From Octopus sinensis (lineage: Eukaryota): a DNA stretch of 64,000 nucleotides. Made by a program: the position numbers and the translations under genes. The notes below the pieces were generated by a model. It ran no database searches, was not told the DNA's origin, and saw nothing but the letters and a program-made list of their open reading frames with translations. The stretch lies in assembly GCF_006345805.1 (NCBI RefSeq), contig NC_043005.1, forward strand, positions 21,142,001 through 21,206,000, read 5' to 3'. Of this stretch, positions 2,214-62,287 are shown piece by piece; the first letter of the stretch is position 1; each line of letters opens with the position of its first letter.

Positions 2214-2384
2214 GTCACCCAATTGTTGACTGTGGACCCTTAAGAAACATTCCTGGTATCATGAGGTCTCGCAATACCACCACCTATAAATCTGAAGTAA
2301 CCTATACTTGTCCAGGAGGGGGAATATCAAAATTAAGATGTGAAGAGGACAATAAATGGGTTCCAATAGTGTCTAGCTGCAAAG
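2214..2384 (+). CDS. Sushi/CCP-like exon S1 (HPIVDCGPLRNIPGIMRSRNTTTYKSEVTYTCPGGGISKLRCEEDNKWVPIVSSCK)
   Basis: ttctcaattccag acceptor and G|gtaat donor; 171 nt, phase 1-1. Four Cys in the CCP pattern C-x-P...V-x-Y-x-C...C-x5-W-x6-C. Not in the ORF track because it is too short. Confidence 0.88.
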
Positions 2385-3499
2385 GTAATATAAATAGGTT
2401 CTCATTGTCTCTAACTCAGTAATTTTGTTTTGATTTTGTTAAGTGTCGCAGAGGAAGAATGGCTGACTTCATGTCAGTTTCCACAGTGTTTGTAGTATGT
2501 GAAAGACAGGGATATTCACAAATTCTTGCAAGGGAGTGAACTTCATTTAAAGAACACAAAAGGTCAGGTAATGTTATTAATCTGGTTGCTGGTTTACGTC
2601 TGCCTCACAAGAACAGAAGCTTGTTCTCTCTAAGAGGCTTCCACATTGTTTCCATTCACCAAATTTAATCTACAGAGCTTTATTGTGAACAAGCTATAAC
2701 CATGCAGCTAGAGATCCTCAAAATACTACATTGTTGAGCTTATTACCACTGCTATATCTCAGCTCATCTTGATAGTTTTTCTCTCAATTTCTAACTTGAC
2801 CTTTCTCATCTACACTTTGTGTCTACATCCAAAATTTTGTACAATATATAGCACTGAATCCTTCTTTACTAGAATTCAGCAATCATCTGGAATTGACCCC
2901 TGAAACTCTAGTGATTTTACATTCCACATTCTAAATTATAATAACGCAAATAATTATAGTGGTTTCTGATTTGGATAAAAAGCCAAAAATTTCTAATAGA
3001 CAGTGTTTCGTTAGTATCATCGACTTTAGTACTTGACTGTTATATTATGTTACCATTATATTATGTTATGTTATATTAAGCTACCCCTCTCAAGAATGAA
3101 AAGAAAAATTGACATTGGATGGGTTTCAAGTGAAAGCTTGAATAAATACCATGAAGCATTTCTTCCAGTTCTGTAACAAGTATACATTTGCACATTTAAA
3201 ATAAAGATGAGAACGATGATGCAATCCTCTGGAATGTAAAAGAATCTTTGTCTAGGATTTTTTGAAGAACCGCACAATCAAAGATCACCATGAACTCCAC
3301 AGTCAAGTGTCCCCTCCAATTAGTATTGTCTGACAGGTTTATGCACTGTAGTTTCTATCCTCCTTTGATTTTTTTTGTCACTTTCATGTCATTTTCAAGA
3401 ATGTTCCCTCAGGATAGTATCTTAATTACCATCCGTACCTTGTTTACAACTGAAAATTTAAAACTATGATGACCAAAAAGGCAAGTCTCTGCCATTAGT

Positions 3500-4600
3500 C
3501 CTTATAACCTCTTCCACATCACAACTTCATTTGCTGTTACTATCCAATAGAGAAAAACTGCCTACTCTCTCTGGTTAAAAGAGAATGTGTGGCAATGATC
3601 ATGGTGGGCTTGACTGATAGCCAGATCTGCACCCCAGACAGTAGCTGCTGTTTGACATGCTGTTTGTTTATGTCAACAATACATAAACAATGGACAAGTG
3701 CTTGCAATATGATTTTGTTACCCTGCACATGCCTTGGACAGGATTATCTGATGATACATCCAGGACTGTAGGCTTTATCTTGGTGCAGTAGAGCCCTTTG
3801 GTAGTGCTACTTAGCTTAGGATTTCAGAAACTTGTATATACTCTCTGAACAAAGTTATCCATTCATATTTGTTGATGCCCTGAGCAACCTTTTATAATGT
3901 CAACACCCTATCCTTCCACTAACACTCTATAGATTGCTAGAGGGAAACAGTCCCTAGTGTCATCAACCAAATTAGTTTTGATCTAGCATATATCTCTTGA
4001 AATCCTTAGAATTACATAGGATAATGTAAATTAAACTTTTACAAGATGGTTGCATTTGATTGAAGAAAATTTTATCAATATTCTGAAAATGCTGGCCGTC
4101 CATGTAGTGGATTCCATAGAGGTTGGCCCACAATAAATTTTGAACTTATTGCAAGTTAGATCTGTCACAGCTGTTGAGTTAATTATATAAAATATTTCTT
4201 CCTATCAAAGATCACAACTGAAATAACTGGTATTGTATGTAAGAGCATTACTTCATATCATAATTTATGTTCTTATTCTTCAAATCCCAAATACATTTAC
4301 TAAGATTAGTAGAATTAATATTTCTCTTAAATTTAAACAAAGAAAAATGATTATATTAAAAACAGTGGAAATTGAACCATGGAGTAAGCAAGTAAGATCC
4401 CCAGCTATAACTATATATTGATATATTAAATTCTTTCTTAAACATTGATTTCTTTGAGGACACTTAAGGGTGTTTCTACATTTACAAAGACATTTACTAT
4501 TGCCTGAGTAGTAACTCCAGTTACAAAGATTAGTGTTAACACTACTCACAAAACTAGGATTAAAACAGGATTCTTATTTGTGTTGTTGTCAATAATATTC
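3500..4600 (-). mobile_element. Ancient Tx1/L1-like LINE relic in the intron after S1
   Basis: ORF 3540..3728 (KIILQALVHCLCIVDI..HVKQQLLSGVQIWL) aligns with the zf-RVT-like region of ORF 6869..7738 (KTVLHALVQCPSIAEIWVYVEQLLSRVGRIRL). IVIAGDL (endonuclease-like) occurs in ORF 4280..4549. Confidence 0.6.
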
Positions 4601-5559
4601 CTAGATAGTATTTTACACGTACTATCAGTTGTGTCAAATACAAGTTAAACTATTTTCCCTAGAATAACATCTAAATCCCTATTAATGTGGACATTGCTAC
4701 TGAGATTACTATTACCATTATTACTACCACTATTATTACTATTGTTATAATTATCATTAATTATATAATTATTAGGACCTCTACAATTACTTTTTCAACC
4801 AGGACAATTACCACTGTAGCTAGTCTCAAAATTAACCTTTATTGCTCCCATCAGGGTTTATTGATTTTAAATTAACATGCTTCCTAATTGTGTGCTGCAG
4901 TAATTTCAGCCAAATTTCTAGTGCTGAATTGGCAAATTTAGCTTTATGATGATTAAATAAATTTTCTTACCTACTGGACATTTGGAAATATTCATCAAGT
5001 GCTACAAAGAATTTCTGAGAAATATTACTAACTATTTGAAATCTGAAATGTGCATTACACTAGATAATATTTTTTGATTTTGCCCTTCTTTCAACTACAT
5101 GTACTTTATTTCTAATATTATCATATGCAAAATTGTTACTATTTTCATAACTCTTATTTTTATTAAGAAAATTACTGGTACTCATATTATAATTGTCAGA
5201 GTACTTGTTTTATGTCAGTACTCTTATGATTATTATTATCATTAATATTTATACTGAACATACATTTGCTATTTTCCTTTACTCTCTATTTTACATGTGT
5301 GTGTGTGTATGTATGTATGTATTATCTAATCAGCACACCCTCTACATCCAGAACCATTTCTCCTGCATTTCTTCCAATCTTAGTTACTGTATCAGGTGCA
5401 GTCTTTGCAAACATTATGTTGGCTAGCTGACCAGTTCACGGAACACCTATGGGACATCTATCCATGTAGAAGCACCTTCATCACCCATCATTTTTGCTCA
5501 GCTAGTCACACCACCTCACACTTCTATTTTCATAATCTTAATAAGAGAAATCAGTGACT

Positions 5560-6136
5560 TTATTCTTGTCAGACAAGGGCAGTTTTAAAAGGTCATTTTG
5601 TGTGTTTGGTAGAATTCTGAGGGGTGTTGTACTTTGAGCTTGTTCCAGATGGTCATGCTGTGAATGCTAACCTTTGTACTCAACAACTGCAGTGAGTATA
5701 TGATACTTTGAAAATCTGCTACCCAGCATTGATCAATCAAAAACACACACCATTACAGCATCACAGTATCCCAGCATACATTGCCAATGTAACCAAGCAC
5801 AAAATTGATGAACTTGAGGGTCTGAAAGTGCTGCATCATCCTGCCTACAGTCCAGACATTGCCTCATCAGATTACTACTTTTTCCAAGCCATGACTCATT
5901 TCCTGTGTGAACAGAGGTTCAACAATGTGAACGAAATTGAAAACTGAGGCTGTTTATTTTTTTGCCTCTAAACCAGCCAAATGGATCAGCGTGGAATTGA
6001 GTTTCCAGCACAATGAAAACAACAGATCACAGAATATAATGGAATATATTGTGATGAATAAATGTTTACCACATATAATTTGTTTGAACTAATATCTAAA
6101 ACTTGACATACAAAAAAACTTTTTGACTCAGCCTGG

Positions 6137-6138: not shown

Positions 6139-6179
<41 letters not shown>

Positions 6180-6595: not shown

Positions 6596-7890
6596 TTCTT
6601 TTTTATTGGCCACAAGGGCTGACACGCATGATTTGAAACATGAAGGGACAAGACAGGACGAATGGTTACAAAGGGTTTTGTCCGTTTTTGAAAAACATTG
6701 AGTAAAAACTTTATAACAACAATTATAAAACAATGAAAAACTCTCAAAAGGGGGAGACGTTTCGAAAAGTTCCTGGTGGAAAAAACCCTACAAAAGCCAA
6801 CGGAAGCCTGGTAAAAAAAGGGGTGTAGAGAGTCCCTTTTTTTCTCCTTTTGTATTACCTTTTTGAAATTACAGGCGAAACCTGAGAACTGGTCCATTTA
6901 TACAGGCCAGTCTCGCACAATTCACCCACCTTTCATAAAACTTGCTATCGGATAGCACTTTCCTCTCTAACCTCATCTTCCTTTTCAAGTGAAACTTGAA
7001 AAAGTTGATGAGGCCTTGACCAAAGAGGAAAGTGTCTGTCTTTAGCCCTTTCAAACGAGTCCACCACACCACCTCTTTCGCCACAGCCACTAGGCACAAG
7101 AGAACGGCCTCGCCCTCCTTGTTAAAGGAGGTCGGCGGGGCAATCTTCACTATGGATTCAGCCAATAGTCGGATCCGTCCTACACGTGACAGTAGCTGTT
7201 CGACATAAACCCATATTTCAGCAATACTTGGGCACTGGACGAGTGCGTGCAGAACGGTTTTGTCGTCCTGGCAACACCTCGGGCAGGCCCGGCTGACGGC
7301 ACTTCCGTGCCGGTAGAGTTTATCTCGAACAGGCAGAGCCCCTTGGTAGCACTGCCAGGCGAGCGACCTCTGGAAATTATCCATCGGCCCCGGCCCAAAA
7401 GTCCTCCTGAACAGACCGCTCAGTTCGTCATCTTCAACGCCTAGAGTTTCCCCGAGAACGTCGTCGCATTTTTCCTCCACTAACCCTCTATAGAATGCTA
7501 GAGTGGAGCTGTAACCGATCGCATTGCCCGCCTGGTGGAGGGCAGAGAGGGCTTGACGGCACTCGAGGTGCCAAGCGCCCTTTCTCGGTCTACGTTTGAT
7601 CCAGGTCTGCAGCTCCGTCAAAGAGACGAGCTGCGGAAAATCGCGTCTGACAAAAGACGACCACACCTGTTCACCGTCTAGGAAGTGCTTGAGATGCCGC
7701 AGCCTGAGCGCATGTCTGCGCAACAGCAACCACGGCATTCCAAGGCCTCCGTTCAGCGGTCATTGACAGCAGATGGATCGCCTGACCAGTGGCACCTGAC
7801 CCTTCCACAAAAAGTCGAAGAGCAGGCGTACCAGCTTGGCCAACCAGCAGTCGGGACAAGGGACGACGGTCAAGTGGTAATAGATGACGG
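6596..7890 (-). mobile_element. 5'-truncated Tx1/L1-like LINE (C-terminal ORF2 with zf-RVT-like CPRC...H...C), relatively young
   Basis: 289-aa ORF 6869..7738 extends upstream past one TGA (LFDFLWKGQVPLVRRSICCQ*PLNGGLGMP). GC-rich. The 3' UTR has AATAAA and then an (ATT)n tail. Confidence 0.88.
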
Positions 7891-7891
7891 G

Positions 7892-8740: not shown

Positions 8741-8994
8741 TGTATGTATGTACGTATACTCATGTTCATATACATACATACATACATACATACATACATG
8801 CATGTACATATGCATGTACGTACATACAATCATACATATGTACGTACGTATGTATGTGTTTTTATATCAGTGTGTAAATATCTACAATTTGATTATCTTG
8901 ATATTTATCTATGTAGCATTTTCACTTTCTTCTCTTTTCAACCACCTCTTAACATAAAAGCACCATTGGCACCAATTTCTCCTTTTAGTTTCAG

Positions 8995-9165
8995 ATTATG
9001 TAAAAATTAACTGTGGACGTCCAAAAAAAGTTCTTGGTGCATTGAGTTCCTACACAACCACCAACTTTAAATCTGTAGTGAGCTACACTTGCCCAAAGGG
9101 AGAACAACAAAAGTCGACATGTGAATGGAAGAACAAATGGACTCCTGTTGTGGCAACCTGTAGAG
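8995..9165 (+). CDS. Sushi/CCP-like exon S2 (YVKINCGRPKKVLGALSSYTTTNFKSVVSYTCPKGEQQKSTCEWKNKWTPVVATCR)
   Basis: tttcag acceptor and G|gtaat donor; 171 nt; partly within ORF 9042..9344; same four-Cys/Trp pattern as S1. Confidence 0.88.
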
Positions 9166-11462: not shown

Positions 11463-12204
11463 GTAATTATTACTTTTGTTTTAGTATTGGACTTACTGTG
11501 CCTTTTTGGTTTTCGAAAATTGATTCTATTTGTACTTTATAGTGTATTGACAACCATTTCTGTAAAGACATTGACAGGTTAACCTATAAAGACAGCAATA
11601 GATTCTTTCCTGAATAAAATAGAAATGCAATATTAGGAAGTGTAGATACTGTTAGGGCATTCTCATAACAGACTATTCTACAAGGATAGGCTGAAAAGTT
11701 CATAGGAAGGAGCAATGCCAGAGCTCTGAAGTCATGCATGCTTTAATTTGAACTGTTATTAATTTCCAGGTAAACTGATTGCTCAAAGTAAGGAATCCTC
11801 TTTACTTAAATTAAGATTCGACCCAGAAAGCCTAACAAGTGAAACAAACACGTTCAAAGAAGTTACAATTAGTATTTCCAAAATATGATACTTCATAGCT
11901 GGAATTACTAAAAGAATATCCAATTCATCCTCAAGAAGACATAGTTTTACCTAGATTTTTTTTTATAGTCCAGCGTGTTTGCTTGGATTGGCATCAGTAA
12001 GAAGTTTGTATAAACCAAGCATCCCTCATACTAGAAGAGAATTAGGGAAATAAAATAACTTGATGAACATAGCTAGGAACATTTTATCCTTCATTAGACA
12101 CCATTTCTCAGACCTACACAAGTATCACATGCTTATGAATGTGCATGGTGTTAGTTCGTTACTCCTGTTTAGATTGCATGATTTCCAGCAATATAAGTTA
12201 CATT

Positions 12205-13350
12205 ATCATCATCATTTAACGTCCATTTCCAATACTAGCATATGTTGGATGATTTGACTTGGAGTGACCAGTTGGAGAGCTGTCAAGACTCCAGTTTTCT
12301 GTTTCCACACAGTTTCTATGGCTGGATGCTCTTCTTAATGCCAGACACTTTACAGAGTGAGCTGGGTGCATTTTACACACCACTGGCATCGGTGTTTTTA
12401 TGCAGCTCTGGCATAAGTACAATTTATGTGGCATCAGCACCTGTGAGTGACTAGCTTGTATGTATGAATGATAGTGATTTTATTTAATGTGACATGTCTT
12501 CTCAAGTGCAGTAAATCATCAGAACTCCTGGTCCCTTGTCATTTCCTCAGTGAGGACCAGCATCTGAAGTTCTTTTCTCAACACTTCATTCCATGTCTTC
12601 CTGGGTTCGCCCCACAATTAGAGCTCAGCTCTTCTTTATGCAGCTGTCCTCATCCATACACATCACATGACCATACTAGTGCAGTCTTCTCACTTGCACA
12701 CAACATGTGATGACTCATACTCAGTTTTCCTCTTAAATCATTTACACTTTGTCATGCATGCACTCTGACATTATCCATCCAGCAGAGCATGCTAACTTCA
12801 TTTCTTTCCAGCATTTACAAGTCTTCTGTAGTCAAAACCAATGTTTCACTGCCATATAGCATAGCTGTACATAAACGGGTATCATACAATCTGCCTTTTA
12901 CTCTGAGGGAGAGACTCTTAGTTACCAATAAAGGTAGTTCTTATTCCAGCAACTACACTTTCAGAACTTCCTCCTCCACTGCTAACTTGGTTGCTTAGAT
13001 AAGAGATGTATGGAGTTTCTACCAACACCCATCTTATAAATCGAACAAGTTATCTCCCTGAAGAGACTTGTGATTTGTCTGTTCTCCTACTTACTAGGAT
13101 TTTGGTTTTTGGGTCTACATTAGGCACACTCTCCTTCTGCTGTGCCTTCAAGAATTTCTCAATGGGTGGTGAAGGTTCATTTTCTTTACATGATAGTATT
13201 TAAATCTTTCCTGGCACCTTATCTATCAAAGGACCCACTCATAAGTACTTTTATCCATCCAGCTTATTCTGCGAATAAGTCAAGTACATTTCCCTTTACC
13301 TTTTATCAATTGTCTTTATAATTCAGTATTCAGCTCCATAAGTGATTGTA
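12205..13350 (-). mobile_element. Degenerate RTE-clade LINE 3' fragment
   Basis: catcatcatttaacgtccatttcc tail, plus RT C-terminal sequence similar to 14600-15000 with deletions. Confidence 0.7.
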
Positions 13351-13770
13351 CTAAGTATCAATGAATTGAGAAGTCATTCTTTTGTACACCAAGAGATGGG
13401 TTCATTCTTCCATATCCTTTTCAGTGATATCATGACATTCTTGGCTATGCTGAGTCTTCTCTTGATTTGCCAGGTATGATTGTAGTCATTGATAAGAGTA
13501 TCAATGTACATATATTCTTTTATATGTTTCCAATATTTTCATTACTTTTGCTTCTAGGGGTTTAGTACATGTGTACTTGCGTTGTTTTGCTCAATAAACT
13601 AAATCCAGTAGTTCTTGCATGTTGCTGGCTATGAGGACTACATCATCTGCATACATCAGATTTGAGATCATCATGATATCAATTTTGTTGCTTCCAACAA
13701 AAGAACGCTAGTTCACACATACAAACATTCACACACTTCCCTTATACATGCCCACACATACATACATATA

Positions 13771-13807
<37 letters not shown>

Positions 13808-13840
<33 letters not shown>

Positions 13841-16800
13841 ACGTCTGCTTTCCATGCTAGCATGGGTTGGACGATTTTGACTGAGGGCTGGTGAACCAGA
13901 TGGCTGCACCAGGCTCCAATCTTGATTTGGCAGAGTTTCTACAGCTGGATACCCTTCCTAACGCCAACCACTCCGAGAGTGTAGTGGGAGCTTTTTATGT
14001 GCCACCGGCATGGAAGCCAGTCAGGCGGTACTGGTAACGAACTCGCTCGAATCTTTTTACAAATGCCACCAGCACAGGTGCCAGTAAGACGACATTGGTA
14101 ACGATCACGCTCGAATGGTGCCCTTTTACGTGCCACCGGTACAGAAGCCAGTTGGCTGCTCTGGCAACGATCACGCAGGATGGTGCTCTTGGCACCCTAC
14201 TAGCATGGGCACAAGTGTCAGTAAGGTGACGCTGGTAATGATCACACTCGTAAGGTGCTCTTTGAACCCCGCTAGTACAGATGCCAGTCATCGAATGTGA
14301 TTTTGATTTCACTTGCCTCAGCAGGTCTTCGCAAGCAGAGTTTAGTGTCCAAGAAAGTAAAAGGTTCATATAAGTGGGCTGGTTACGCTCCTGGCATAGG
14401 CCACAGGTTATGGTTTCATTTGACGTGCCGGGTCTTCTCAAGCACACCATATTTCCAAAAGTCTCGGTCGCTAGTCATTTCCTTAGTGAGGCCTAATGTT
14501 CGAAGGTCATGCTTCACCACTTCATCCCAGGTCTTCCTGGGTCTACCTGTTCCACAGGTTCCCTCAACCGCTAGGGTGTGGTACCTTTTCATACAGCCAT
14601 CCTCCTCCATTCTCACTACATGACCATACCAGCACAGTCGTCTCTCTTGCACACACATCTCATGCTTCTTAGGTCCAGCATTTCTCTCAAAGTACCTACA
14701 CTCTGTCGAGTATGCACACTGACATTACACATCCATCAGATCATACTGGCTTCATTCCTTGCAAGCTTACACATGTCCTCAGCAGTCACAGCCCATGTTT
14801 CACTGTCATGTAGCATGGCTGTTCATACACAAGTGTCATACAATCTACCTTTTACTCTGAGCGAGAGACCCTTTGTCGCCAGCAGAGGTAAGCGCTCTCT
14901 GAACTTTGCCCAAGCTATTCTTATTCAAGCAGCTACACTTTCAGCGCACCCACCTCAGCTACTGGTTTGGTCACCTAGGTAATGGAAGCTATCAACTACT
15001 TCTAGTTTTTCTCCCTGGAATGTGGCAGAAGTTGGTCTCTACGCATTTTCAGTGTTTATTGCTCCCAAGCATCTGCCACATACAAAAACTATCTTCCCAG
15101 TTAGCCTTCCTTTGATATTGCTGCATCTCTTATGTGTCTATAGCTTACACTGGGTACATCTTATAGAGTTTCTACCTACGCCTCTACTACAGATTGAGCA
15201 GGGCCATCTACCTGAAGGGATTTGTGGTTTGTCTGCCTTCCTACATATTAGGACTTTGGTTTTAGCTAGGTTGATTCTAAGGCACTTCGATTCTAATCCT
15301 TGTTTCCACACTTGAAACTTCTCCTCTAGTTCTGATAGTGACTCAGCAATTAGAGCAAGATCATCAGCATAGAGGAGATCCCAGGGGCATCCTGTCTTGA
15401 ATTCCTCCGTTATTGCCTGGAGGATTATGTTAAATAGGAGGAGGCTGAGAACTGAACCTTGGTGGACCCCTACCTCTACCCTGAATTCTTCAGTGTACTC
15501 GTTGCCAACCCTCACCTTACTTACAGCATCCCTGTACATGGCTTGCACAGCTCTCACTAACCATTCATCTATCTCTAGTTTCCTCATTGACCACCAGATA
15601 AGGGATCGGGGGACCCTGTCAAAGGCTTTCTCCATGTCAACAAAAGCCAGGTATAGGGGTTTATCCTCGGCTAGGTATTTCTCCAGCAGCTGTCTTACCA
15701 GAAATATAGCATCAGTGGTGCTTTTCCCTGGCACGAAATCAAACTGCATCTCATCCAAGCTGACTCTCTCCCTAATCAGTTGGGCTATGACCCTCTCTGT
15801 CACCTTCATTACCTGATCCAACAGCTTGATACCTCTGTGATTATTTGTATCTAAAGCATCAGCTTTACCTTTGTAGCAGTTGACTATTATGCTACTACAC
15901 CAGTCATTGTGTATGACTCCTTCGTGTATCACCTGGTTAACTATACGGGTGACTAGGCTCTAGCCGACACTGCCTGATATTTTGAGTATCTCTGCAGTGA
16001 TTCCTGATGGGCCTGGGTCTTTCCCTGTCTTCATGCTTCTAATTGCCTTATCTACCAAGGAAATGTCAACTCAGATAGCTGGTCCATCTGTTGGGTCGAC
16101 ATTTGGCAGACTCTCTTCCATTTATTTTCTTTGTTCAGCAACCGTTCATAGTGGCATTTCCAAACTTCTCTCTTTGCATCCTCATTCAGCACAAGTGAAC
16201 CATCATCTGTGTGAACACATTTCTCTCCTACCACATCACGATTCTCTCTCACACATTGTCTTGCAACACGAAATACCTCAAGTCTTTCATCCTCATGGCA
16301 CAGAACATTGGCAATTTTTTTCTTATCTGCTTCTCCTCTGGCTAAATAAACCTGCCTCCTAGCTTCCCTTCTGGCAGTCTGATACACTTCCCTGCTACCA
16401 CCGTTCTTCCAGTCCTTCCAAACATGTTCCTTTTCTCTAATAGCCCTGTCAACAACATTGTTCCACCACCATGTTATTTTGGGTCGAGAGGGGACTTTGC
16501 ACTATCCACAGATCTGGTCGGTGGCCCTTAGCAGGTTGTCCTGTAGGAACCTCTAGTTGTCTTCTATACCATGTGAAGCTATATCCCCTACTATTTCGTC
16601 AAAGGCTTTGAGTAATATGTCTCTAAATTTCTGTCCATTTGCAGGATCTTTAAGTCTCCAGACCCTTCTTCTCCTTGCTGGTCGTCTTCTGGGCATCCAT
16701 TTAGCCCTGATCCTGAAGTCACTACCTACTAGTCTATGTTGTGGGGTACAATTCTTCACCTGGGAAGGTTTTGGCATTTATAAGCAGCCATCTTTCCCTT

Positions 16801-17490
16801 TTTCTGGTGAGGATGTAGTCGATCTGACTAGTGTGTCTGCCAGAGCTGTAGGTGACTAGATGGCTGGCAGGTTTTCTGAAGTTAGTATTGCAAACCATAG
16901 GATCATTTGTGTCACGGAACTCCAGCAGCCTGGTTCCCCCCTCATTGCGAGAGCCAAAACCGTAGCCTCCATGTATGCCATGGAAGCCCCCGACATGTTG
17001 TCCAACATGTCCATTGAAGTCGCCAGCCACAAAGAGAAGGTCCCTGTCATTCGTCAACGCGGTAGTCTGCAAGAGGGTGTCTTTCTGTCCATCAGGTAGC
17101 CCTGGCTGAGGGACATAGGCCGAGATAATGGTTGCTAACCCATGATGGAGCACTGATCTAATCTTAAGTATTCTGTCGCATACTCTGACTACCTCAATTA
17201 CTTTATCTACCCATTTCTCTGCAAGAAGTATACCAACACCCCCAACCCCGTCAGTGTTCCCTGCCCAGAAAATCTGGTACCTGTGTTCTTTGCCTGTGAG
17301 GAACCTAGCAGAACCTCCTCTCCACCTTACTTCTTGGATGCATCATATATCGACACATCTCCGTTCAAGCATCTCAACAATCTCACCAGACCTACCCTTC
17401 AGTGTGCCAACATTGAGAGTGCCAACCCTGAGGGTGTGGGAAGTATGGGCTCTAGAGATCCTGGGATGGAGGACAGTGGCATCATGTACC
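13808..17490 (-). pseudogene. Near full-length RTE-clade LINE, ORF2 (APE endonuclease + RT) disrupted by stops and frameshifts
   Basis: Endonuclease: TLNVGTLKGR...IQEVRW at about 17480, plus AGDFNGHVG and QIDYIL in 16734..17153. RT: FVDMEKAFD, GVHQGS, LLYADD in 15138..15932. C-terminus in 14416..14658. The 3' UTR has internal tandem repeats and a (GAT)n tail. Confidence 0.92.
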
Positions 17491-18405
17491 TGAAAAGAGA
17501 GCTCTCATTTGGCAGAATTCATAAGCAAACAATAGTCTTAAATTCAACCTGCATATGCTACACTATCATGTTTTGCACTGTATGATCACTACCTTATATA
17601 GTAGGGGTGGGGTAGGTGTAAGGCCTTTAGCAGTGTTCATGGGAGACAAGCAAAGGAAGATGAAATAGGGACTTCCGGTCCAGGTGGAGGGGGTGGGAGG
17701 GCGGGCGAACTGGCAACCATGCGCTAGGAATTAAAAGAGACAGAGTGAAGGCCGATAGATAGATAGATAGGCATATAGTGTAGGAATTAAAAGAGACAGA
17801 GTGAAGGCCGATATATGAGCCAGTGGGGGGGAGGGTCACGACATGTGGGAGGAATGGTTCTGGGATTTGAAGAAAGACAAGATTAGAGACGAAGGACTGT
17901 GTGATCATGTGATAAATTTTCATGAGTGAAAGAATATGTTGCAAATTAAGGAAATGCATGAGCTAGGGTTTAAAACGAAAAGACATCGACAGTAAGATGA
18001 AGCTATAGAACTATATTTACATGATGGCAAGGTGCCAGAATAAGACAGAATAGCGAGAATATAATAATAAGGGTTAATGATGATGATACTTGCAAAAAAT
18101 ACAATGAAAGGTAAGTAACAAGTTGAAGGTTAAAATCTCATATCTGAAATTTTTCATCCTCTGAGACTCGTATTTTACAGCCAGGGTATCGAAGTCAATA
18201 GAAGGGTCAGCAAGTATGCATTAGTTTATATTGGGTGCTTGAAGGTGTGGTGGGAGGAAGTAGGGAGTCTTGCTAGGCAGGTGGTAATCGAAAGAGAGTG
18301 AGATATAGATACGGACAGAGTGACAGCCGATAGAGAGAGAGAGAGATACATAGTGATAAAGAGAGGAGAGACAAGACACGAACTGCAAACTGGCAATATA
18401 TACAT

Positions 18406-18451
<46 letters not shown>

Positions 18452-18566
18452 ATAATAATAATAATAATAATAACAATTTGAGGGAATATTATTCCTAACT
18501 TACAGGGAAAAATTCAATTTAGAAATACTAAATCAAATTTCACAAAATATATAATATTTATATAAA

Positions 18567-18850
18567 AATTAGAAAAAAACCACCTTTTATCAATTCAAAA
18601 GTAACAATTAAATTACACCATCTACAAAATTATATATAATAGAAATATCTAAAATAAAATAACAATGATATACTGATGATTAAGTAAATTGCAAAATAAT
18701 AATAAAAGCGTATATATTTGGTAGAATAACGACACGTGTTTCATGGCTATATTTAAGAAATGATTATAGTAAAAAAATTAAAAGTAGTAGTAAAATCACT
18801 TCAATATAAATATAGCCACTCATCAGGTGAAAAATAAACTACAATAATAA
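18567..18850 (-). repeat. Left arm of an inverted repeat (Penelope-type tail family H1)
   Basis: Reverse complement of about 19985-20262. The family extends left to about 18480 and recurs at 7925-8000/8318-8370. Confidence 0.8.
18727..18830 (-). ncRNA. Type I hammerhead ribozyme-like motif (H1, copy A)
   Basis: tcac-CTGATGA-gtggctatattt...aaatatagccat-GAAA-cacgtg-TC-gtta: intact core, 12-bp stem II, palindromic stem III, GUC site. Confidence 0.6.
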
Positions 18851-18914
18851 AGTAATTGATTAATAAATATACGTAAATAATCTTTTAAAATATAAATATA
18901 TTCTTTAATATATA

Positions 18915-18952
<38 letters not shown>

Positions 18953-19984
18953 TACTAACTATACATTAAGTGAAAACTAAAAACAATACTTAAATTATAC
19001 AATACATTAAAATGAATTAATATACACAATGCTAATTCAAGCCATTAATAATGTAATCAAAATAAGAAATGGTTCAAATATAGACAAACTCATTAAATAA
19101 GCTAACTATATAATTAATATATATGTGTAGTTTCTATTGATTTAATATATCACTCAATAATATAGTTCACTAAATATCAATTGACAATTACACATATGCT
19201 GTTGTCTGAAGTGAATGAAGCTTTCTGCTTTTGCAGATGTTAACAGGATATATTCCGTAGTCTAACAGCATATGATAGCAGCAAGAGAATAGCTTTTACA
19301 TTTGTTCACTTGATCAATTATTATTGCAAACCTAGCAATTTACTCAACATTCATTTGTTTCTCAACTGTTCCATATGATTAGAATTTGAAAATGTCTTTG
19401 GTGAGAAACAACTCCGCTAAGTCTCATATTAATAATATCTTAGGTGACAATTAGGAAACATACTTGAAAGTTCCAATGTAATGGATGAAGTGCATTATTA
19501 GAAATATCCCTGAAAGCCAGATGCTAGACTTAGTTCATGAAGCAAAGAAACGTGGAAATTGCATGATAGAGGTGTAGGGAATTAATTAAAAAAATTAAAT
19601 AAAAGCAGTAATAAAACGCCTTGTATGTAAATAATGTACTTACAAGAGATAGTAAAGTGGGCAGTGATAATATCATGTTTCCAGAATCTATGATTGCCAG
19701 CATGAGAACTTCAATGTGGTTGCTCGATCTGCTAGAAAAAGCAGCCATGTCTAGCTCAAATCACATTCTACTATCTTCAATAAATATATGAGTGTATAAA
19801 TAACCCTAAAATTGTTGACTTGGGGGCTATACATCATCGTCGTTTAACGTCCGTTCTCCATGCTAGCATGGGTTAACAAACAGTATATGATTGTCTTAGA
19901 ATACAGTCTCATCCAACTTTGGAACCATATTGCTGTTTGTTAATGTATTTTAGAAAATAAATAAGTTCCACTATTCTAGTTTAT

Positions 19985-20262
19985 TCTAGTTTATTTTTAA
20001 CCTGATGAGTGGCTATATATATATATATATCAAAGTGATTTTACTGCTACTATTAATTTTTTTTACTATAATCATTTCTTAAATATAGCTATGAAACACG
20101 TGTCATTATTCTACCAAATATATACGTTTTTATTATTATTTTGCAATTTACTTAATCATCGGTATATTATTATTTTATTTTATATATTTCCATTATATGT
20201 AATTTTCTAGATGGTGTAATTTAATTGTTCATTTTGAATTGATAAAAGGTGTTTTTTTAAAT
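19985..20262 (+). repeat. Right arm of the inverted repeat (family H1)
   Basis: Reverse complement of 18567-18850, e.g. ttttgaattgataaaaggt vs accttttatcaattcaaaa and gaaacacgtgtc vs gacacgtgtttc. Confidence 0.8.
19998..20108 (+). ncRNA. Type I hammerhead ribozyme-like motif (H1, copy B)
   Basis: taac-CTGATGA-gtggctatat...atatagctat-GAAA-cacgtg-TC-atta. Confidence 0.58.
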
Positions 20263-20299
20263 TATATATATATATATATATATATATACTTACCTACAT

Positions 20300-20334
<35 letters not shown>

Positions 20335-20367
20335 CATATACATACATACATACATATATATATATAT

Positions 20368-20404
<37 letters not shown>

Positions 20405-20752
20405 TACATACACAGACAAATACATACATGAATTTCTACATTGAATTGCATGGATATACATATATATAGACAACAGATATATTTATATACATTTATAGAT
20501 TCATATAGACATAGCCTCTATACACTTCTTATCATTTTCTCTTCTATTCTACAATATATTTTGTGTTTTGTAGAATGATTCATTAAGGAACTTATTTTAT
20601 GAGTACTACCAGATTACTTGAATCCATATCTTGTGACCTAAATATATATCATCACCATCATTTAACATCTGCTTTCCATGCAGGCATATGTTGCATTGTT
20701 TGACAGGAGCTGGCCAGGTTGAAAACTACTCCAGGCTATATATATATATATT

Positions 20753-20783
<31 letters not shown>

Positions 20784-20799
20784 TATATACATATATAAA

Positions 20800-21345
20800 T
20801 AGATGAGTGAATTTTTACCTTGTTTACAATCAACACGGAAAAAATAAATAAATAGTTACCTGGGTAACAAAAATCTCACAAGTAAAGAGGTTGTAACTCC
20901 TTGTTTATAAAGGTAGAAACTTCGTGTTTACGTGGAATATTTTGAATAATATATGAATAGAGTGAGCATTCAGATGCAAACATTGGCAAAAACACACATT
21001 TAGTGCATATAAGTAGTTTCTATCATTATATATAATTTAAACTTTAATTTCCTTTATATTTAACATTCACTATTAATATCCCTTCTCTTTCTGTAAGCTA
21101 CTTATGACGTTATATCATATAACGTTTTTTTAAGCAATATTAATAGCATTCAGTCCAATGCTATACAAATCCATCATTTTTTGCTAAAATGTCTTATTGA
21201 CGAGTTTCGTTTTTTTCACTTTCCTGAAGAGAAGATTGCATTGTTTATACCATTTATTCTTTTGAATAGTATCAGTAGAATTTTCGAAACGTGTCAAAAG
21301 TAAAAATATTTGATTTACACCTGCGTTAAACAACATTTATTTATT
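20800..21345 (+). mobile_element. Penelope-like element 3' end relic with tail family H2
   Basis: A decayed ..RCKHWQK.. C-terminus-like segment near 20975, then a tail shared with 54440-54640. Confidence 0.5.
21218..21301 (+). ncRNA. Type I hammerhead ribozyme-like motif (H2, copy A)
   Basis: actttc-CTGAAGA-gaagatt...aattttc-GAAA-cgtg-TC-aaaagt. Confidence 0.55.
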
Positions 21346-21742
<397 letters not shown>

Positions 21743-21754
21743 CAGCAGGAGCAA

Positions 21755-23280: not shown

Positions 23281-23299
23281 CTTATACACCAAATTTGTT

Positions 23300-35990: not shown

Positions 35991-36026
35991 ATGATTTATT
36001 TTCTGGTCAAAGATCTTATACTCTCT

Positions 36027-36212: not shown

Positions 36213-36564
36213 CTCTAAAAATTTGCCTGTAGTTTTTCATGGTAAATTTGAGATTAAAAAAAAAAATGTTTTCCATATTCTTAATCTCTGTATTTTTCCA
36301 TGTACATTGAAGAATAGATGGCGAAAAGAGTTTTGTAGCATATTAGGAGGCCAAAAAATAAAATTTTCTTTTCTTAGTGAACATCGTGCAAGTGTTAATC
36401 TAAAAATTTACCAACCTTTTTTCCATTCATTTCTGTTTATGAAATTCTCTGTACGTAATTTTGCTTTCTCGGTGGTCAAAGCAAATTATGACTGGCAAAG
36501 CAACAGTGAGAAAGAGAGACAGGTGTGTGAGTGTGTGTAGATATATATATATATATATATACAT

Positions 36565-43789: not shown

Positions 43790-46272
43790 ATCCCCTCATC
43801 GTGAAGGGGTATACGGTGGCCATGGTATTGGCACCCAAAACGACGAGGGGACTAGGCTATTGGAATTCTGTGATGCATGTAACCTTTTAATCTGCAACAC
43901 TAACTTCAGGAAGCCAGACAGTCATCTTATAACTTATCAATCAGGGGACACTGCTAGCCAGATTGATTTCACCCTCACCAGACAGCGGGATGCAGGGTTG
44001 CTCTAAAATACAAAGACCCTCCCAGGTGAAGAATGTATTCCCCAGCATAGGCTAGACATTAGTGACTTTAGGCTCGAGGCCAGAAGGATACCTAGAAGCA
44101 GACCAATCCAGAAAAGAAGGATTTGGAAGCTAAAGAACCCTTCACACGGTCAGAGATTTAGGGACATCCTCATCAAGAAATTTGATGAGAGGGAGGAGGA
44201 GCTACAGACATCGGACATAGAAGGTAGCTGGAAATTCTTTCAGGACAGCTTGCTGAGTGCCACAGACCAAGTTTGCGGATGGAGCAAAGTCCCTTCCAGA
44301 CCCAGAGTTACATGGTGGTGGAATAGAATGGTAGACAAAGCCATTAGGGCAAAGAAACAGGCCTGGAAATCCTGGAAGGATGGTGGTAGCAGAGAATGGT
44401 ACCAGGTAGCCAGAAGGGAGGCTGGGCAGCAGGTATACATAGCCAAGAGTGAAGCAGAAAAGAAGTTTGCCAGTGCCCAGAGACGCGAGGACCAAAGAAC
44501 TGAGGTATTTCAGATTGCAAATCAGTGTGTGAGAGAAAATTGTGATGTCACAGGAGAGAAATGTGTTCGAATGGATGATGGTGCACTTGCTTTTAATGAT
44601 TCTGAAAAGAAAGAGGCTTGGAGAAGCCATTATGAAAGACTGCTGAATGTGGAGAATGAATGGGAGGAGGAGAATGAATGGGAGGAGGGACCAGCTATCC
44701 AAATAGGCAGCTCCCTAGTAGTTAAAGCAATTAACGGTATGAAGCCAGGAAAAGCCCCCGGCCCATCAGGATTCACTGCTGAGATGCTTAAAGCATCTGG
44801 TGGTGTGGGCTATGGCTTAGTCACCCGCATTGTAAATCAGGTAGTACATAACAGAGTCATACCCAATAACTGGTGTAGCAGCACCATAGTTAACTGCCAC
44901 AAGGGTAAAGGTGATGCTCTAGATAGGAATAACTACAGGGGTATTAAACTGCTGGATCAGGGGATGAAGGTCACAGAGAGGGTCATAGTCCATCTCATTA
45001 GGGAGAGAGTCTGCTTAGATGAGATGCAGTTTGGTTTTGTTCCGGGTAGAAGCACCACTGATGCCATATTCCTGGTTCAACAACTGCAGGAGAAATACCT
45101 AGCTAAAGATAAACCCCTCTACTTAGCTTTTGTGGACTTGGAGAAAGCCTATGACAGGTTCCCCTGATTCCTTATCGGGTTGGCAATGTGGAAACTGGAG
45201 CTTGATGAATGGTTAATAAGGGCTGTACAGGCCCTATACAGAGAGGCCGTTAGTAAGGTTAGGATTGGCAACGAGTATAGTGAAGAATTCCATGTAGAAC
45301 TAGGGGTCCACCAAGGTTCAGCTCTTAGCCCTCTTCTATTCATCATATTCCACCAGGCAATAACAGAGGAATTCAAGACGGGTTGCTCCTGGGAGCTCCT
45401 TTATGCTGATGACCTGGCCCTCATAGCAGAATCACAACCGGAACTAGAAAAGAAATTTCGGGTGTGGAAGCTAGGTTTAGAACCAAAGGGCCTTAGAGTA
45501 AATGTAGCAAAGACCAAAGTTATAGTAAGCAGAAAGGCGAACTCATCACACATACCCTTGGGCAGGTGGCCCTGCTCGATCTGTAGAAAAGGTGTAGGTA
45601 GAAACTCCATAAGATGTACCCAGTGTAAGCTATGGTTGCACAAGAGGTGCAGCAACATCAAAAGAAAATTAACTGAGAAGATAGCTTTCATGTGCAGCAG
45701 ATGCACAGGGGCAATACACACCACAGATACTCAGAAAACAGATTCCATCACACTCCAGGGGAAGAAACTAGAGGTAGTTGGCAGTTTCCACTATCTAGGT
45801 GACCAAGTTAGTAGTGGGAGTGGATGCTCAGATAGTGTCACCACTAGAATACAAATAGCCTGGGCAAAGTTTAGAAAGCTCCTACCCCTACTGGTGACAA
45901 AGGGTCTCTCACTCAGAGTGAAAGGTAGTTTGTACGATGTATGTGTGTGAACTGCCATGCTTCACAGTAGTGAAACATGGGCTGTAACTGCAGAGGACAT
46001 GCGTAGACTTGAAAGAAATGGAAATTGTAATTATGATACCTGTGCTGGCGGCACGTAAAAAGCACTATCCGAACGTGACTGCTGCCAGCCTCCCCTGGCA
46101 CGTAAAAAGCACCCACTACACTCATGGAGTGGAAGGGCATCCAGCTGTTGAAACTCTGCCAGATCAGACTGGTGCAGCCTTCTGGCTTCCCAGACCCTGG
46201 TCAAACTGTCCAACCTGTACTAGCACGGAAAACGGATGTTAAACGACGATGATGATGATAATGATGATGATG
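43790..46272 (+). pseudogene. 5'-truncated RTE-clade LINE (partial endonuclease + RT + tail)
   Basis: ORF 44250..45167 (RGIKLLDQ, FVDLEKAYD) and 45180..45950 (GVHQGS, LLYADD, YLGD); the tail ends ggatgttaaacgacgatgatgat. Confidence 0.92.
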
Positions 46273-55569: not shown

Positions 55570-56530
55570 AATTTTATCTTATTTTATTTTTTATATTTTT
55601 ATTTTTTATTCCAATATTAAATTTATTATTTACATCATCAAAATACCTATTATTATTAGGATGATAAAAATTTAATAAATAAAATTTATCATAATTCAGA
55701 TAATTAGGTGTATCATTAGTAAAATCATTTATATTATACTCCTTCAAATTATAATTATGTTTACAAGGTATTAAAGAATTTAATATTATATCCTGCCTCA
55801 TGCAGGGCTTTATTGTAATAAGGTGCATGTTTATTAAAAATCTCTAAATCATAAGAAAGTAATGATATTCTTTTACCTACATTATTTTTCAATGATTTTT
55901 TAACAGAAGGTGGATGATACTATAAGTATTAATATATCTGAGATTTTCATTAATTTTATGAAATGGTTGGGTTTTACCCATTATTAAATTAAAATTAACA
56001 TCTAAATAATTAACATTATAGTTCTCATTATAAATAGTAATACTTAAACTATATCTTTTAAAGAAATTATAAAGTTTCTTTTTAGATAATTCTAATTTTC
56101 TATTTGTACAATCCCTAGTAAGTAATAAACGGTCATCCCTATATAGACCACCCTCCAAATTAAAATTTCCTAATTGAAGTTCTGATAATAATAAATACCT
56201 ACTAAATAAGTAGCCTGTGCAGAATCTGGTGCCCCCATAGGTATATCAAAATAGTCTCTAGTATACTTCCTAGCCCATAATTTATTATTATATCTAATTA
56301 ATGATTTCCTAACCATTTTAATAACATTAACTTCATCAGAGGTCATTCCTACATTATTCATTGCATGTATTAGGGCTTTATTAAGTACAATCTCATTAAT
56401 AGAAGAAGAAGAAGTATCTATATCTATTTGAATGAATTTATATTTATTTTTATCTTTACTATTATGAAACCATTTTAAAGTATCATTATTACTATTCCAA
56501 AGTTTAAGGTAATTAAATTCATTCATTTTG
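55570..56530 (-). mobile_element. Penelope-like element reverse transcriptase relic
   Basis: FIQIDID...SI, FDIPMGAPDSAQ..YLVG, GLYRDD, VNYLDVNFNL (ORFs 56170..56526 and 55889..56158): Penelope-type RT motifs. Confidence 0.8.
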
Positions 56531-57599: not shown

Positions 57600-58660
57600 A
57601 ATTTGAACCTTGAAACTCACTGCATTCAATAAAACAGTGACTCACAATGTGTTTGCAGTGCCAGTACTAATACCAACTTTAGGCTGCTTGATTAGTTGTT
57701 TCATGAGATCTGAGTCATTGATGTGAAAACCTGAAAAATACTAACAAGCACACGTAATTTCTACATAAACAGTGATGTAGACCACATCTACCTAAATTAA
57801 AAACAAGGTGGCAGAGGCTAAACATCAATCCAAAATGCCTTTGAATGTCAGCTCACATGCCATCGGCAACATCTTTTAACTACCAAATGTCAAAGTGCAT
57901 CCCTTGACCAAGTTTGAATTCATGAAACTGATAACATCATGAGACTTGGAAGACAGTTTCTTGAGCAGCAGGACAAAGAAATAAGAACCGACAGTATGGT
58001 AGAAGCCATAGCCACTCATAATAAAAAGGAGTATTGGTGGAATGTCCCAGTGAAAACCTCAATAAAATATAAATACAATAGACCTGATGCAATGATTTGG
58101 GATAATGAACAGAAACTGCGTACAGTTGTTGAAATCAGTTGCCCAGCAGATGTTAACATAAAGCTGAAGATCAGTGAAAAAGAGAATACTTATGCTGAAC
58201 TATTGAGAAATCTGCAGTTACTCTATCCAGATTACAAGTTCAACTTTATACCTGTAATTATTGGGGTACTGGGATGTGTAACACACTACCTAAATACCAA
58301 TATTGAGCAATTAGGCTTCTCAAAACTAGAAAGGGGAAAGCTGATTCAAAGACTACAGATCTAAGCTATCACTGGAACTGTAAAAATATATAAAACTTTC
58401 CAGAAGTTTATCGTTTAAGTATATATGAGCATGTCCAGATATGCAAGTATATGTATGAGATGAGAAGACATACATAAAACAATACATACAAATATATAAA
58501 TCTGCACATACACATATGTACATACAAAAATATGTATAGGTACATACATATATACAAAAAATACCTTGTTGATGTTGAAATTCCGGTGAAGAAGCATTGG
58601 ATCTAGTTTAGAAAGTGGCTCTTTCTCTATTGGCAAGGAATCTTGAAATAAAACTGAAAA
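57600..58660 (+). mobile_element. R4/Dong-like LINE 3' fragment (REL domain) with 3' UTR
   Basis: ORF 57939..58364: NRPDAMIWD...VVEISCP...KENTY..L...IPVIIGVLG (PD..D/ExK-type REL domain). Confidence 0.8.
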
Positions 58661-58811
58661 ATAACATACATACACTCATACATGTATGAATTTATAGCTA
58701 TATGCAAATGTCTTCAATTTGTCCAGTCATTATCTTTTATTTTGAATTTGTCATCATCAGCCTCCTCCTAACATAATAATCCTTGATATCAATTTCTCTT
58801 CTCAATTCCAG

Positions 58812-60089: not shown

Positions 60090-60600
60090 CCTATTTTGCA
60101 ATAGTTACCTTTCAGAAAGTATTGATGGACTTAACTGACAGCCAGATCTCTATCACCCCAACAGCATCTTTTTGATATGACTCCACAAGTCAGCAATGTG
60201 TGGACATTGGCTGAATACATCTTGGACAAGCCTGTCTAATGGCTGTAGATTTTATCTTGGACCAATGGATTCCTTTGATGGCACTGCCAAACCAAAGTTA
60301 TCTATGGTATTCCCTATCCAAAAGTTCTCCCATACAAATTTAAAAGTTTATTTTTACGAATGTACAGCACAACCCTTTAGAACATTAGTGCTCTCTTTTT
60401 TCACTAAATATTTATAGATTGTTATAGCAAAACATAACAACAACACTGCCCAGCTCAGGTTTGATCCAGCATACTATATTTTCTGAAATCTTTTAGATTA
60501 CCTTAAATACTGTGAAGTACCCATTTTGAAGATTGTTGTTTGTCATTGAGGCAGCTCTTGATATTTCTAACATATTTAGCATCCAAGAGCTTTCACAGTA
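60090..60600 (-). mobile_element. Ancient Tx1/L1-like relic, duplicated copy after S5
   Basis: tgtggacattggctga...catcttggacaagcctgtctaatggc...ttttatcttggacc is homologous to the copies after S1, S2 and S3. Confidence 0.55.
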
Positions 60601-62047
60601 AGTGGTAGTCAGTAAATGTTTAACTTTTATATTGAAAGCTACCAGCCCTGACATAGCTTATCCCCTTTGTTATAGTTTGTTAAGTAGTTCAAACTACTCT
60701 CTGATTTTTTAGGTGTCTATGGCAATGGTGATGGACAGTACTTGATCAATGTTGATATATTTCTTACAATGACAAATACACATATTTATACAAACATTCT
60801 CAGGCTAGCATGGACTATAGTAATCACAGAATTGTTGGAAGAAGAGTGGCCCAAGAATCATGAAATAGCTGTTTCTGCTATCATTAGTTTCTTAAAAGAT
60901 AAAAATTCCACCTATTGTAATAACTTATATTCATTGTTTAGGGACACAACCAAGAATAATTAGAGAAATCAATAAGAGTATGTGATATTCATGTCTTTCT
61001 CAAGGGTACTAACTGTCTATGTAAAGTGAAGTGACTTAGAAGAATCAAAGCCAGATCATTAGCTCACACCACGAAGTACGTATTTATACTAAAAGAATGA
61101 CTTCTTGGAATACACTTCGCAACAGGGAAAGCTTCTGAGTCATTTAAAATTAAAATTAACATTGTATGTGTGATTGGTATTTTCTATTTTATTTACTTCT
61201 AACAATAGAGAGATGAAGAGGGAGAGAAATTTAGTGATTAGGAAGATAGAAACTTCCTTGAGTTTAGGTCTTCATTCTGAGAGTCTTCAAAAGATCTTGT
61301 ATTATTTCCCTTTTTTTTTGAACTCCAATGCTTGTTCACCTTGTTTGATAGTTCCTCATGTAGATACATTTTCTATGCTTCTTATATTAAATTTTGAATG
61401 TCCATGTTTACTACATATATATATATTAATTCACTGGATGATGATGAGCGAATAATTATCTTTGTTTTTCTAGGCAAAACATTGCAAAATCAGCAAAGTG
61501 ATGAGTCTTGTGAACCTCATTTGTTGTATTCTTTTACATTCTAGGTTTAAATCCCATGTACTTGAGTTTTCATTCTTATGTGGTTGATAAAACAAGCACT
61601 AGTCAAATACTGTGGATGATTTAGTTTCATGTATTTTCACTGCAAAATATGTGGCCTTGTGCTTAAGTTAGAAACCATTATCATTAATATTGTTGCTATC
61701 AACAATAGCTATAATTATTTTTGTTGTTAAAGGTGATTATTTGGATGGATAATCAGGTAATACAAGAAAGTATCATAGTCAATTCATCGCCAGCAGAATC
61801 ATTGTAAGCTGCTACAAAAATTCAACAGAATTCTTTGAGCATCAGTGGTATATGTTCTGGCTCTTTAACTTCTGAGTTCAAATCCTGCTGATGTAAACTT
61901 CACTTTTCTAGCAACAATAAAATACTAGTCAACTTTAGAAGCCAATTTTATTTATCAATTCTGACCTCAAAGATTTGGACTACTTTCTATGTTAGAAGTT
62001 GTTGTTGTTGTTATTTTTAATTGGTTTAAATTTTACTTCAATTCTAG

Positions 62048-62287
62048 ATATTCCAGCGAATTTTGTAAAAATAAGTAGCTCGTTTTTGGATGTATCTGGG
62101 AAAAGGTTGTGGAATAAGAAAAATGTAACAGTGGAAGCCTGTGCTGACAAATGTTTGTCTTACAAAAACTGTTTATCATTTGAAGTAACTAAAAAAGGTG
62201 GAAAATGTTACTTACTTCAGGGAAGTGCAGTATCCTCCACAGAAATAAAAACATCAAATACTAGAGATTACTACCAACGAGTAAAAC
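62048..62287 (+). CDS. PAN/Apple-like exon PB3 (IPANFVKISSSFLDV...CADKCLSYKNCLSFEVTKKGGKCYLL...DYYQRVK)
   Basis: attctag acceptor and C|gtaatt donor; 240 nt; within ORF 61999..62337; paralog of PB1 and PB2. Confidence 0.88.

Follow-up and report, generated by a model that had tools for sequence, protein, structure and literature searches.

We analysed a 64,000-nucleotide stretch of the Octopus sinensis genome (contig NC_043005.1, positions 21,142,001 to 21,206,000; hereafter, the window), in which ten short exons scattered over 60 kb encode a string of Sushi/CCP and PAN modules. The window is probably an internal slice of a very large octopod array, built with one module per exon and every exon in phase 1-1, which grew from a coleoid gene encoding a GON-domain protein. 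The exon structure, the module folds, the orthology between species, the continuity of the array and the pattern of selection form the observed part of this explanation, and they are described first.

Ten module exons and their folds

The initial annotation of the window, made from its letters alone, had described ten hidden exons with canonical splice sites that join into an open reading frame of 679 codons, five of them modules of 57 codons and five of 77-80 codons, with four Cys in each. We searched the window by tblastn, using as queries the three conserved kinds of plus-strand peptide found in its open reading frame list. Exactly ten plus-strand matches were retrieved across the 64 kb, with nothing else above noise: five S (Sushi/CCP) exons, three PB and two PA, the last two being two types of PAN exon. 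Exon ends were set by extending each match to the nearest in-phase AG and GT. The resulting boundaries, from the start at 2214 to the end at 62287, bear out the described exons and their module sizes, and only the acceptor of S2 is ambiguous. The exons are listed below with their orthologues in O. bimaculoides DNA (locus L004; loci L006 and L007 are also from this species, L001 and L002 are from O. vulgaris and L003 is from O. sinensis).

2214-2384, plus strand: S1, Sushi/CCP, 57 codons; orthologue L004 11802-11972, equal in length and splice sites
8989 or 8995 to 9165, plus strand: S2, Sushi/CCP, tandem acceptor, 59 or 57 codons; orthologue L004 14052-14228
11226-11462, plus strand: PB1, PAN type B, 79 codons, terminal DYYQR motif; orthologue L004 15398-15634
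25299-25529, plus strand: PA1, PAN type A, 77 codons, donor gtcagtag; orthologue L004 15865-16095
37988-38158, plus strand: S3, Sushi/CCP, 57 codons; orthologue L004 17830-18000
41065-41304, plus strand: PB2, PAN type B, 80 codons; orthologue L004 20958-21194, shorter by one codon
48485-48718, plus strand: PA2, PAN type A, 78 codons, donor gtcagtag; orthologue L004 24549-24782
51526-51696, plus strand: S4, Sushi/CCP, 57 codons; orthologue L004 25920-26090
58812-58982, plus strand: S5, Sushi/CCP, 57 codons, 22.2 bits alone with Pfam Sushi; orthologue L004 27444-27614
62048-62287, plus strand: PB3, PAN type B, 80 codons; orthologue L004 29344-29583

All ten exons are preceded by AG and followed by GT, all ten are phase 1-1, and their acceptors are pyrimidine-rich. 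The donors are characteristic of the module type, gtaattat for PB and gtcagtag for PA. Spliced in the order S-S-PB-PA-S-PB-PA-S-S-PB, the exons add up to 2037 nt (679 codons, zero stops), which represents 3.2% of the window. With four Cys per module, the product contains 40 Cys; it has an isoelectric point of 9.3, a net charge of +49 and six N-glycosylation sequons, and no hydrophobic segment of membrane-span length was found in the 679 codons. The next PA exon after PB3 lies past the end of the window, at about 81.8 kb of L001. The ambiguity in S2 comes from a tandem acceptor (ttttag followed by TTTCAG, window 8987-8994) whose two sites are 6 nt apart and which is kept in the window, O. vulgaris and O. 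bimaculoides. The upstream site at 8989, which adds Val-Ser and gives 59 codons, is the choice of the O. vulgaris and O. bimaculoides models. We favour the site at 8995 (57 codons) because it reproduces the spacing of 17 nt between the acceptor and the Cys codon seen in the four other S exons.

The module types named in the initial annotation, Sushi/CCP and PAN, were recovered in profile searches. Pfam PAN_1 (PF00024) matched the spliced protein in five stretches (143.1 bits, E = 2.4e-42), and single exons were also matched (PB1, 44.6 bits; PA1, 41.0 bits; gathering cut-off, 21.4). When 17 PB-PA-S units, taken from the window and from related proteins, were aligned (A1), 12 Cys proved invariant, and PB and PA each carried the motif C-x3-C-x5-C-x11-C. 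The PB1-PA1-S3 unit of the window was modelled with AlphaFold (predicted local distance difference test score, pLDDT, 84.5), with a helix predicted across the first two Cys, and Foldseek matched this model to the apple domains of factor XI/kallikrein, to MIC4 and SML-2, and to the PAN domains of HGF-N and plasminogen. By Pfam, the AlphaFold model and Foldseek, PB and PA are thus assigned to the PAN domains. The label given initially was PAN/Apple, of which the first half stands. The strict Apple subtype, with six Cys and a disulfide joining the N and C termini, was rejected, since PB and PA carry only four Cys per module; PAN, not six-Cys apple, is therefore the accurate label.

For the S modules, Pfam Sushi (PF00084) scored 35.4 bits on the spliced protein against a gathering threshold of 20.7. 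Taken singly, 32 of 34 modules match at E <= 0.01, S2 reaching only 15.5 bits. A profile of the PB-PA-S unit compared with the PDB retrieved the CCPs of DAF, CR1, CR2, MASP-2 and MCP, with E down to 7e-8 (DAF, CR1 and CR2, 7e-8 to 1e-6). The consensus over the 34 modules (C8, Y32, C34, C44, W50 and C57 invariant; G9, P11 and G37 in at least 90%) fits that of CCPs, namely four Cys, C-x-x-P, Y-x-C-x-x-G and a Trp between Cys3 and Cys4, and the model of an isolated S module (59 residues) is all-beta with a pLDDT of 84. On profile and consensus motifs, S is classed as Sushi/CCP.

Continuity of the array and its GON-domain relatives

Along its entire length, the spliced protein matches an 861-amino acid (aa) O. 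vulgaris model at 99% identity; its identity to O. bimaculoides LOC128248840 is 83%. O. vulgaris, O. bimaculoides and O. sinensis all have paralogues (38-54% identity), and same-type paralogues within the window share about 50% protein identity. In O. vulgaris, the window corresponds to about 24.02-24.09 Mb of OX597823.1 (98.77% identity); about 60 kb further along the array, O. sinensis (L003) and O. vulgaris (L002) are 98.79% identical. We mapped the modules on about 175 kb of O. vulgaris DNA and 130 kb of O. bimaculoides DNA. In the mapped DNA of both species, a PB-PA-S(-S) cycle runs unbroken across every model boundary and every unannotated gap. The neighbouring models in O. vulgaris (4470 aa upstream, 857 aa and 3597 aa downstream) and in O. 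bimaculoides (1865 aa and 4083 aa) all consist of PAN and Sushi modules, and an O. sinensis model of 2643 aa is made up of 36 modules. All the models analysed contain nothing but the PB-PA-S(-S) cycle, and both of their ends lie within a module. This cycle, probably inherited from the coleoid GON-domain protein, is the natural repeat unit, as opposed to S-S-PB-PA.

In O. bimaculoides (CM046610.1), module exons extend from at or before 88.248 Mb to 88.816 Mb, that is, over at least 0.57 Mb. A GON domain (PF08685) closes the last array model (P0004), and the next gene along, which is CACHD1-like, is unrelated. At the other side, module exons are still present upstream of the first model, so that the 5' end of the array was not reached. 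The annotated array models of this species total 9,618 residues. The window is an internal slice, corresponding to about 7% of the annotated residues, of a much larger octopod gene region. The 679-codon product was initially taken for a large modular protein; its modules hold, but the 679 codons are not a gene by themselves and lie inside an array of more than 9,600 annotated residues. We also observed that an S-PB pair in the O. bimaculoides array (L006 35199-35888) recurs about 27 kb further on (L007 28487-31671) with near-identical peptides, which points to a recent higher-order segmental duplication.

The closest known relatives are the coleoid GON proteins: GON-Abd-1 and GON-Abd-2 of Abdopus aculeatus, GON-SepT-1 and GON-SepT-2 of Sepioteuthis australis, and the product of O. 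bimaculoides LOC106874924. Under their UniProt names, GON-Abd-1, GON-SepT-1 and GON-SepT-2, together with a cuttlefish protein, measure 360-500 aa. Full-length relatives are organised as signal peptide-PB-PA-S(-S)-GON, and the squid and cuttlefish (decapodiform) GON proteins contain a single copy of the unit. They share with the array the PB-PA-S(-S) order, with 30-52% identity and all 12 Cys invariant. In the short O. bimaculoides GON gene, too, each exon encodes a single module, and the PA donor reads gtcagtag as in the window. This short gene shares its chromosome with the array, and the 3' end of the O. bimaculoides array has a GON domain as well. In O. bimaculoides, the short gene (465 aa) is located at 88.12-88.13 Mb, about 0.1 Mb from the first array exon in the fetched DNA; in O. 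vulgaris, it maps to 23.25-23.29 Mb of the chromosome that carries the array, some 0.73 Mb away from where the window aligns. There are also differences. The GON proteins are 450-500 aa long and have one unit behind a signal peptide, whereas the array repeats the unit dozens of times, and the GON and signal-peptide exons of the GON genes are lacking in the window. Moreover, Abdopus and Octopus share at least 90% identity in the short gene, whereas two Octopus species share 83% in the array exons.

The initial annotation had suggested a lineage-specific protein built by tandem exon duplication, and both parts gain support. Homology between paralogous exons in the window runs 100-600 bp into both introns at 65-71% identity, and the amplification was therefore a duplication of genomic blocks. 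In an exhaustive profile hidden Markov model (HMM) search of 1.84 billion representative sequences, the complete PB-PA-S unit was matched only in the octopod proteins listed and in one further sequence (P0013). Annelid PAN arrays and a small number of further secreted proteins from cephalopods contained the PB-PA pair alone, and the remaining matches were generic CCP or PAN repeat proteins. Among the proteins with a PB-PA pair behind a signal peptide (P0134, P0114 and P0041) are a WSC-domain protein of O. bimaculoides and O. sinensis, and Argonauta hians proteins, one of them named 'zonadhesin-like'. On these sequence matches, the PB-PA pair seems to be a reused cassette in cephalopod proteins.

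Given these relationships, it is probable that a paralogue of the GON gene multiplied its PB-PA-S exons as a block, through tandem duplication of genomic DNA, which would have resulted in the array of at least 0.57 Mb with a GON domain at its 3' end seen today in O. bimaculoides.

Selection on the exons and competing explanations

Compared with O. bimaculoides, the window keeps all ten exons in the same order, all 20 splice sites and all 40 Cys. Such conservation and the strength of the PAN_1 match go well past anything expected by chance. Exon lengths agree except for an in-frame deletion of 3 nt in PB2, the sole indel in 2 kb of exon, while gap columns make up 5.4% of the intron flanks. The introns differ greatly in size: the ten exons span 60 kb in the window and 17.8 kb in O. 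bimaculoides, and the PB1-PA1 intron alone is 13.8 kb (window 11463-25298) against 230 bp (L004 15635-15864). In the O. vulgaris group, the locus has thus grown about 3.4-fold through transposon insertion. The 679 codons are open in three genomes. When the observed 163 substitutions were placed at random in 20,000 neutral runs, no stop arose in 6.5e-4 of the runs, all Cys were kept in 2e-4, and both outcomes coincided in 0 of 20,000. We then split the codons by their conservation among the paralogues of the window itself. The ratio of nonsynonymous to synonymous rates (omega, or dN/dS) between the window and O. bimaculoides was 0.23 at paralogue-invariant codons and 1.29 at variable codons. 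Relative to O. vulgaris, the exons of the window differ by 0.20% and the whole window by 0.57%. From these comparisons, we read the Cys scaffold as being under purifying selection, with surfaces that appear to change at or above the neutral rate, the data being too few to prove positive selection.

Several observations weigh against the explanation of the window as part of a functional array derived from a GON gene. The overall dN/dS is 0.82 (dS 0.100, dN 0.082), with a bootstrap 95% interval of 0.58-1.21 that includes 1, and substitution divergence is not lower in exons (8.1%) than in intron flanks (7.1%). Truncated modules occur elsewhere in the O. bimaculoides array. Neither the window nor the approximately 175 kb of O. 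vulgaris DNA around it (L001 and L002) yielded a signal-peptide or GON exon by tblastn; the sole matches to the GON domain and signal peptide of the relatives were PAN cross-matches. All three annotation sets divide the region into many genes, and the 857-aa O. vulgaris model omits two apparently intact exons while keeping the frame (L002 40231-40443, PA; 61616-61852, PB). The isolated S model had no significant Foldseek match in the PDB (best E = 0.68), the domain being very small for this method. As for the two omitted exons, their absence from the model could come from faulty annotation or reflect genuine skipping, for which the uniform phase 1-1 leaves room.

The explanation can be carried further, to the whole region being one gene. 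A 465-aa secreted protein would then have grown, by duplication of a three-exon block, into a secreted string of more than 9,600 residues encoded by about 140 exons, with a gene length of 0.57 Mb or more in O. bimaculoides and probably above 1 Mb in the O. vulgaris group, a frozen scaffold, surfaces evolving at or above the neutral rate and possibly combinatorial splicing. We put this forward tentatively, as a possibility that we find harder to believe than to doubt.

It is rather unlikely that the region instead consists of medium-sized genes clustered in tandem but separate from one another, as the annotations have it (861 aa in the case of the window), each with its own promoter and terminator. 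Such a cluster is what three independent annotations describe in dividing the region into multiple models, and the 861-aa O. vulgaris model does have a start and a stop. However, the starts of the models are internal Met codons of intact module exons; that of the 861-aa model falls within an intact PA exon with a good acceptor (L001 9930-10163). The terminal coding exons are either 8 nt long or read-through into introns, and the 861-aa model ends in an 8-nt coding exon that gives Glu-Ser and a stop codon. The model after it opens with seven codons (MSTRRFY) and no signal peptide, and no signal peptide was found at the start of any of the array models analysed. Furthermore, the three annotations put their boundaries at different points, the O. 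sinensis model P0007 joins exons from either side of the boundary that separates the 857-aa and 3597-aa O. vulgaris models, the unannotated gaps are filled by module exons, and the module exons flanking the boundaries retain phase-1 AG/GT sites. The model boundaries, situated inside or between intact in-phase exons, thus look artificial.

Because every exon is in phase 1-1, the inclusion of units in varying combinations without loss of frame is conceivable. The region could then be a combinatorial exon array, with units spliced alternatively between a 5' signal-peptide exon and 3' GON exons to yield diverse isoforms as a recognition repertoire. The symmetry of all the exons, the in-frame omission of two intact exons in the 857-aa O. 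vulgaris model, the omega above 1 at variable surfaces and the small relatives, which carry exactly one unit, would all fit. Against this, the long models (2643-4470 aa) take in the units consecutively, and the omitted exons may be annotation noise, so that we regard such a repertoire as very improbable. Just as improbable is a decaying, non-functional relic of duplicated exons with a leftover open frame: the overall dN/dS with an interval including 1, an exon divergence equal to that of the intron flanks and the truncated modules would agree with decay, but the frame open in three genomes, the retention of every Cys and splice site with a single in-frame indel, the outcome of the neutral runs, the omega of 0.23 at scaffold codons and the lower divergence of exons from O. 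vulgaris than that of the whole window all speak against it.

Naming, possible role and intron content

The 861-aa O. vulgaris model bears the automatic name 'von Willebrand factor type A, EGF and pentraxin domain-containing 1-like' (SVEP1-like), and O. sinensis models have also been named automatically after SVEP1. SVEP1 is likewise a large extracellular protein with many Sushi/CCP modules, but PAN modules make up over half of the octopus protein, and no vWA, EGF, pentraxin or HYR domain was detected in the spliced protein by Pfam at E <= 1. Identity with SVEP1 is thereby ruled out, and the name is a misnomer. The statement in the initial annotation that this is not a recognisable named gene agrees with our searches, in which only automatic names and no characterised orthologue were found. 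Full-text literature searches retrieved no paper on this gene family, and the papers with apparent 'GON' matches do not discuss it. The warning that the exons could easily be missed applies in part. They are already annotated in O. vulgaris and O. bimaculoides, whose models cover them; in O. sinensis, no protein model at least 90% identical to these exons was found in the protein search, and they may be unannotated there. Database entries hold the array in fragments under automatic names, and a word-indexed protein search listed none of the long models (2643 aa of O. sinensis; 4470 aa and 3597 aa of O. vulgaris). The three Octopus annotations cut the locus arbitrarily and give it misleading names, and expression, proteomic and evolutionary studies based on these models will therefore misread it.

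Outside cephalopods, tandem PAN/apple modules used for multivalent binding are found in Toxoplasma gondii MIC4 and Sarcocystis muris SML-2, which gave the best PAN profile and structure matches. These proteins differ in belonging to an apicomplexan lineage, in having no CCP and in their 2-6 modules, compared to dozens in the octopus array. The apple domains of factor XI and prekallikrein share the PAN fold (Foldseek E = 5e-5 for factor XI) and the core C-x3-C-x5-C-x11-C, and the N-terminal PAN domains of HGF-N and plasminogen superpose in Foldseek with a root-mean-square deviation of 2.1-2.5 A over about 84 residues. Unlike factor XI, prekallikrein, HGF and plasminogen, the octopus modules come without the third apple disulfide and without protease or kringle domains. 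The CCP arrays of CR1, CR2, DAF and MCP share the C-x-x-P, Y-x-C-x-x-G and W consensus and the arrangement of one module per exon in phase 1-1. The octopus CCPs are, in contrast, interleaved with pairs of PAN modules, and the likeness is no evidence of complement regulation.

The PAN domains of MIC4 and SML-2 bind galactose, that of HGF-N binds heparin and those of factor XI bind proteins, while CCPs bind proteins and glycosaminoglycans. The initial annotation proposed an extracellular protein for recognition or adhesion. From the signal peptides of the relatives and the types of module, we infer that the product is extracellular; it may act in recognition or adhesion. The product would most likely be a secreted, disulfide-rich and strongly basic string of domains, possibly one giant protein if a single transcript covers the array. 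It may bind glycans, polyanions or proteins multivalently, either within a secretion or on an extracellular surface, and saliva or venom, mucus and immune agglutination are candidate settings. The GON-Abd and GON-SepT entries reportedly come from transcriptomes of the posterior salivary (venom) gland (Ruder et al. 2013), and saliva or venom is therefore a reasonable first place to look for the product.

Lineage-specific gene expansions are a known trait of cephalopod genomes. The expansion at this locus would be of a different kind, having taken place inside a gene: a small secreted PAN-PAN-CCP-GON protein, common to squid, cuttlefish and octopus, would have become a huge modular array in octopods. 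A conserved Cys scaffold with fast-evolving surfaces is a pattern typical of proteins that meet prey, pathogens or gametes. To the initial annotation, this analysis adds that the exons are already annotated elsewhere under a misleading name, that they form a small slice of a giant array probably derived from the coleoid GON gene, and that they evolve unusually fast on a fixed scaffold. If a single transcript were to cover it, the locus would rank with the largest genes of animals and make exon-block amplification accessible to study, and the one-gene reading, if true, would provide a new example of cephalopod innovation through domain arrays.

The introns of the window contain the following mobile element remnants and simple repeats:

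15138-17153 (minus strand), 44250-45950 (plus strand) and 6869-7738 (minus strand): degraded pieces of non-long terminal repeat retrotransposons, with RVT_1, endonuclease-reverse transcriptase, zf-RVT, and reverse transcriptase plus PHD finger
28287-29225, minus strand: remnant of a mariner/Mos1-type transposase (HTH_48, E = 6e-20)
21347-21742: microsatellite, (AT) x201
36026-36214: microsatellite, perfect (TCT) x63

Neither transfer RNAs nor Rfam families were detected in the window. No Pfam match was obtained for the intron open reading frames at 28287-28577 (minus strand), 5708-5947 (plus strand), 56170-56526 (minus strand) and 57939-58364 (plus strand), the second of which is transposase-like. 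The AT-rich open reading frames at 55574-56526 (minus strand) and 57939-58364 (plus strand) encode 84-141 aa rich in Asn, Lys and Tyr and are possibly remnants of an uncharacterised mobile element. The (TCT) x63 repeat at 36026-36214 yields the poly-Leu and poly-Glu frames of the open reading frame list.

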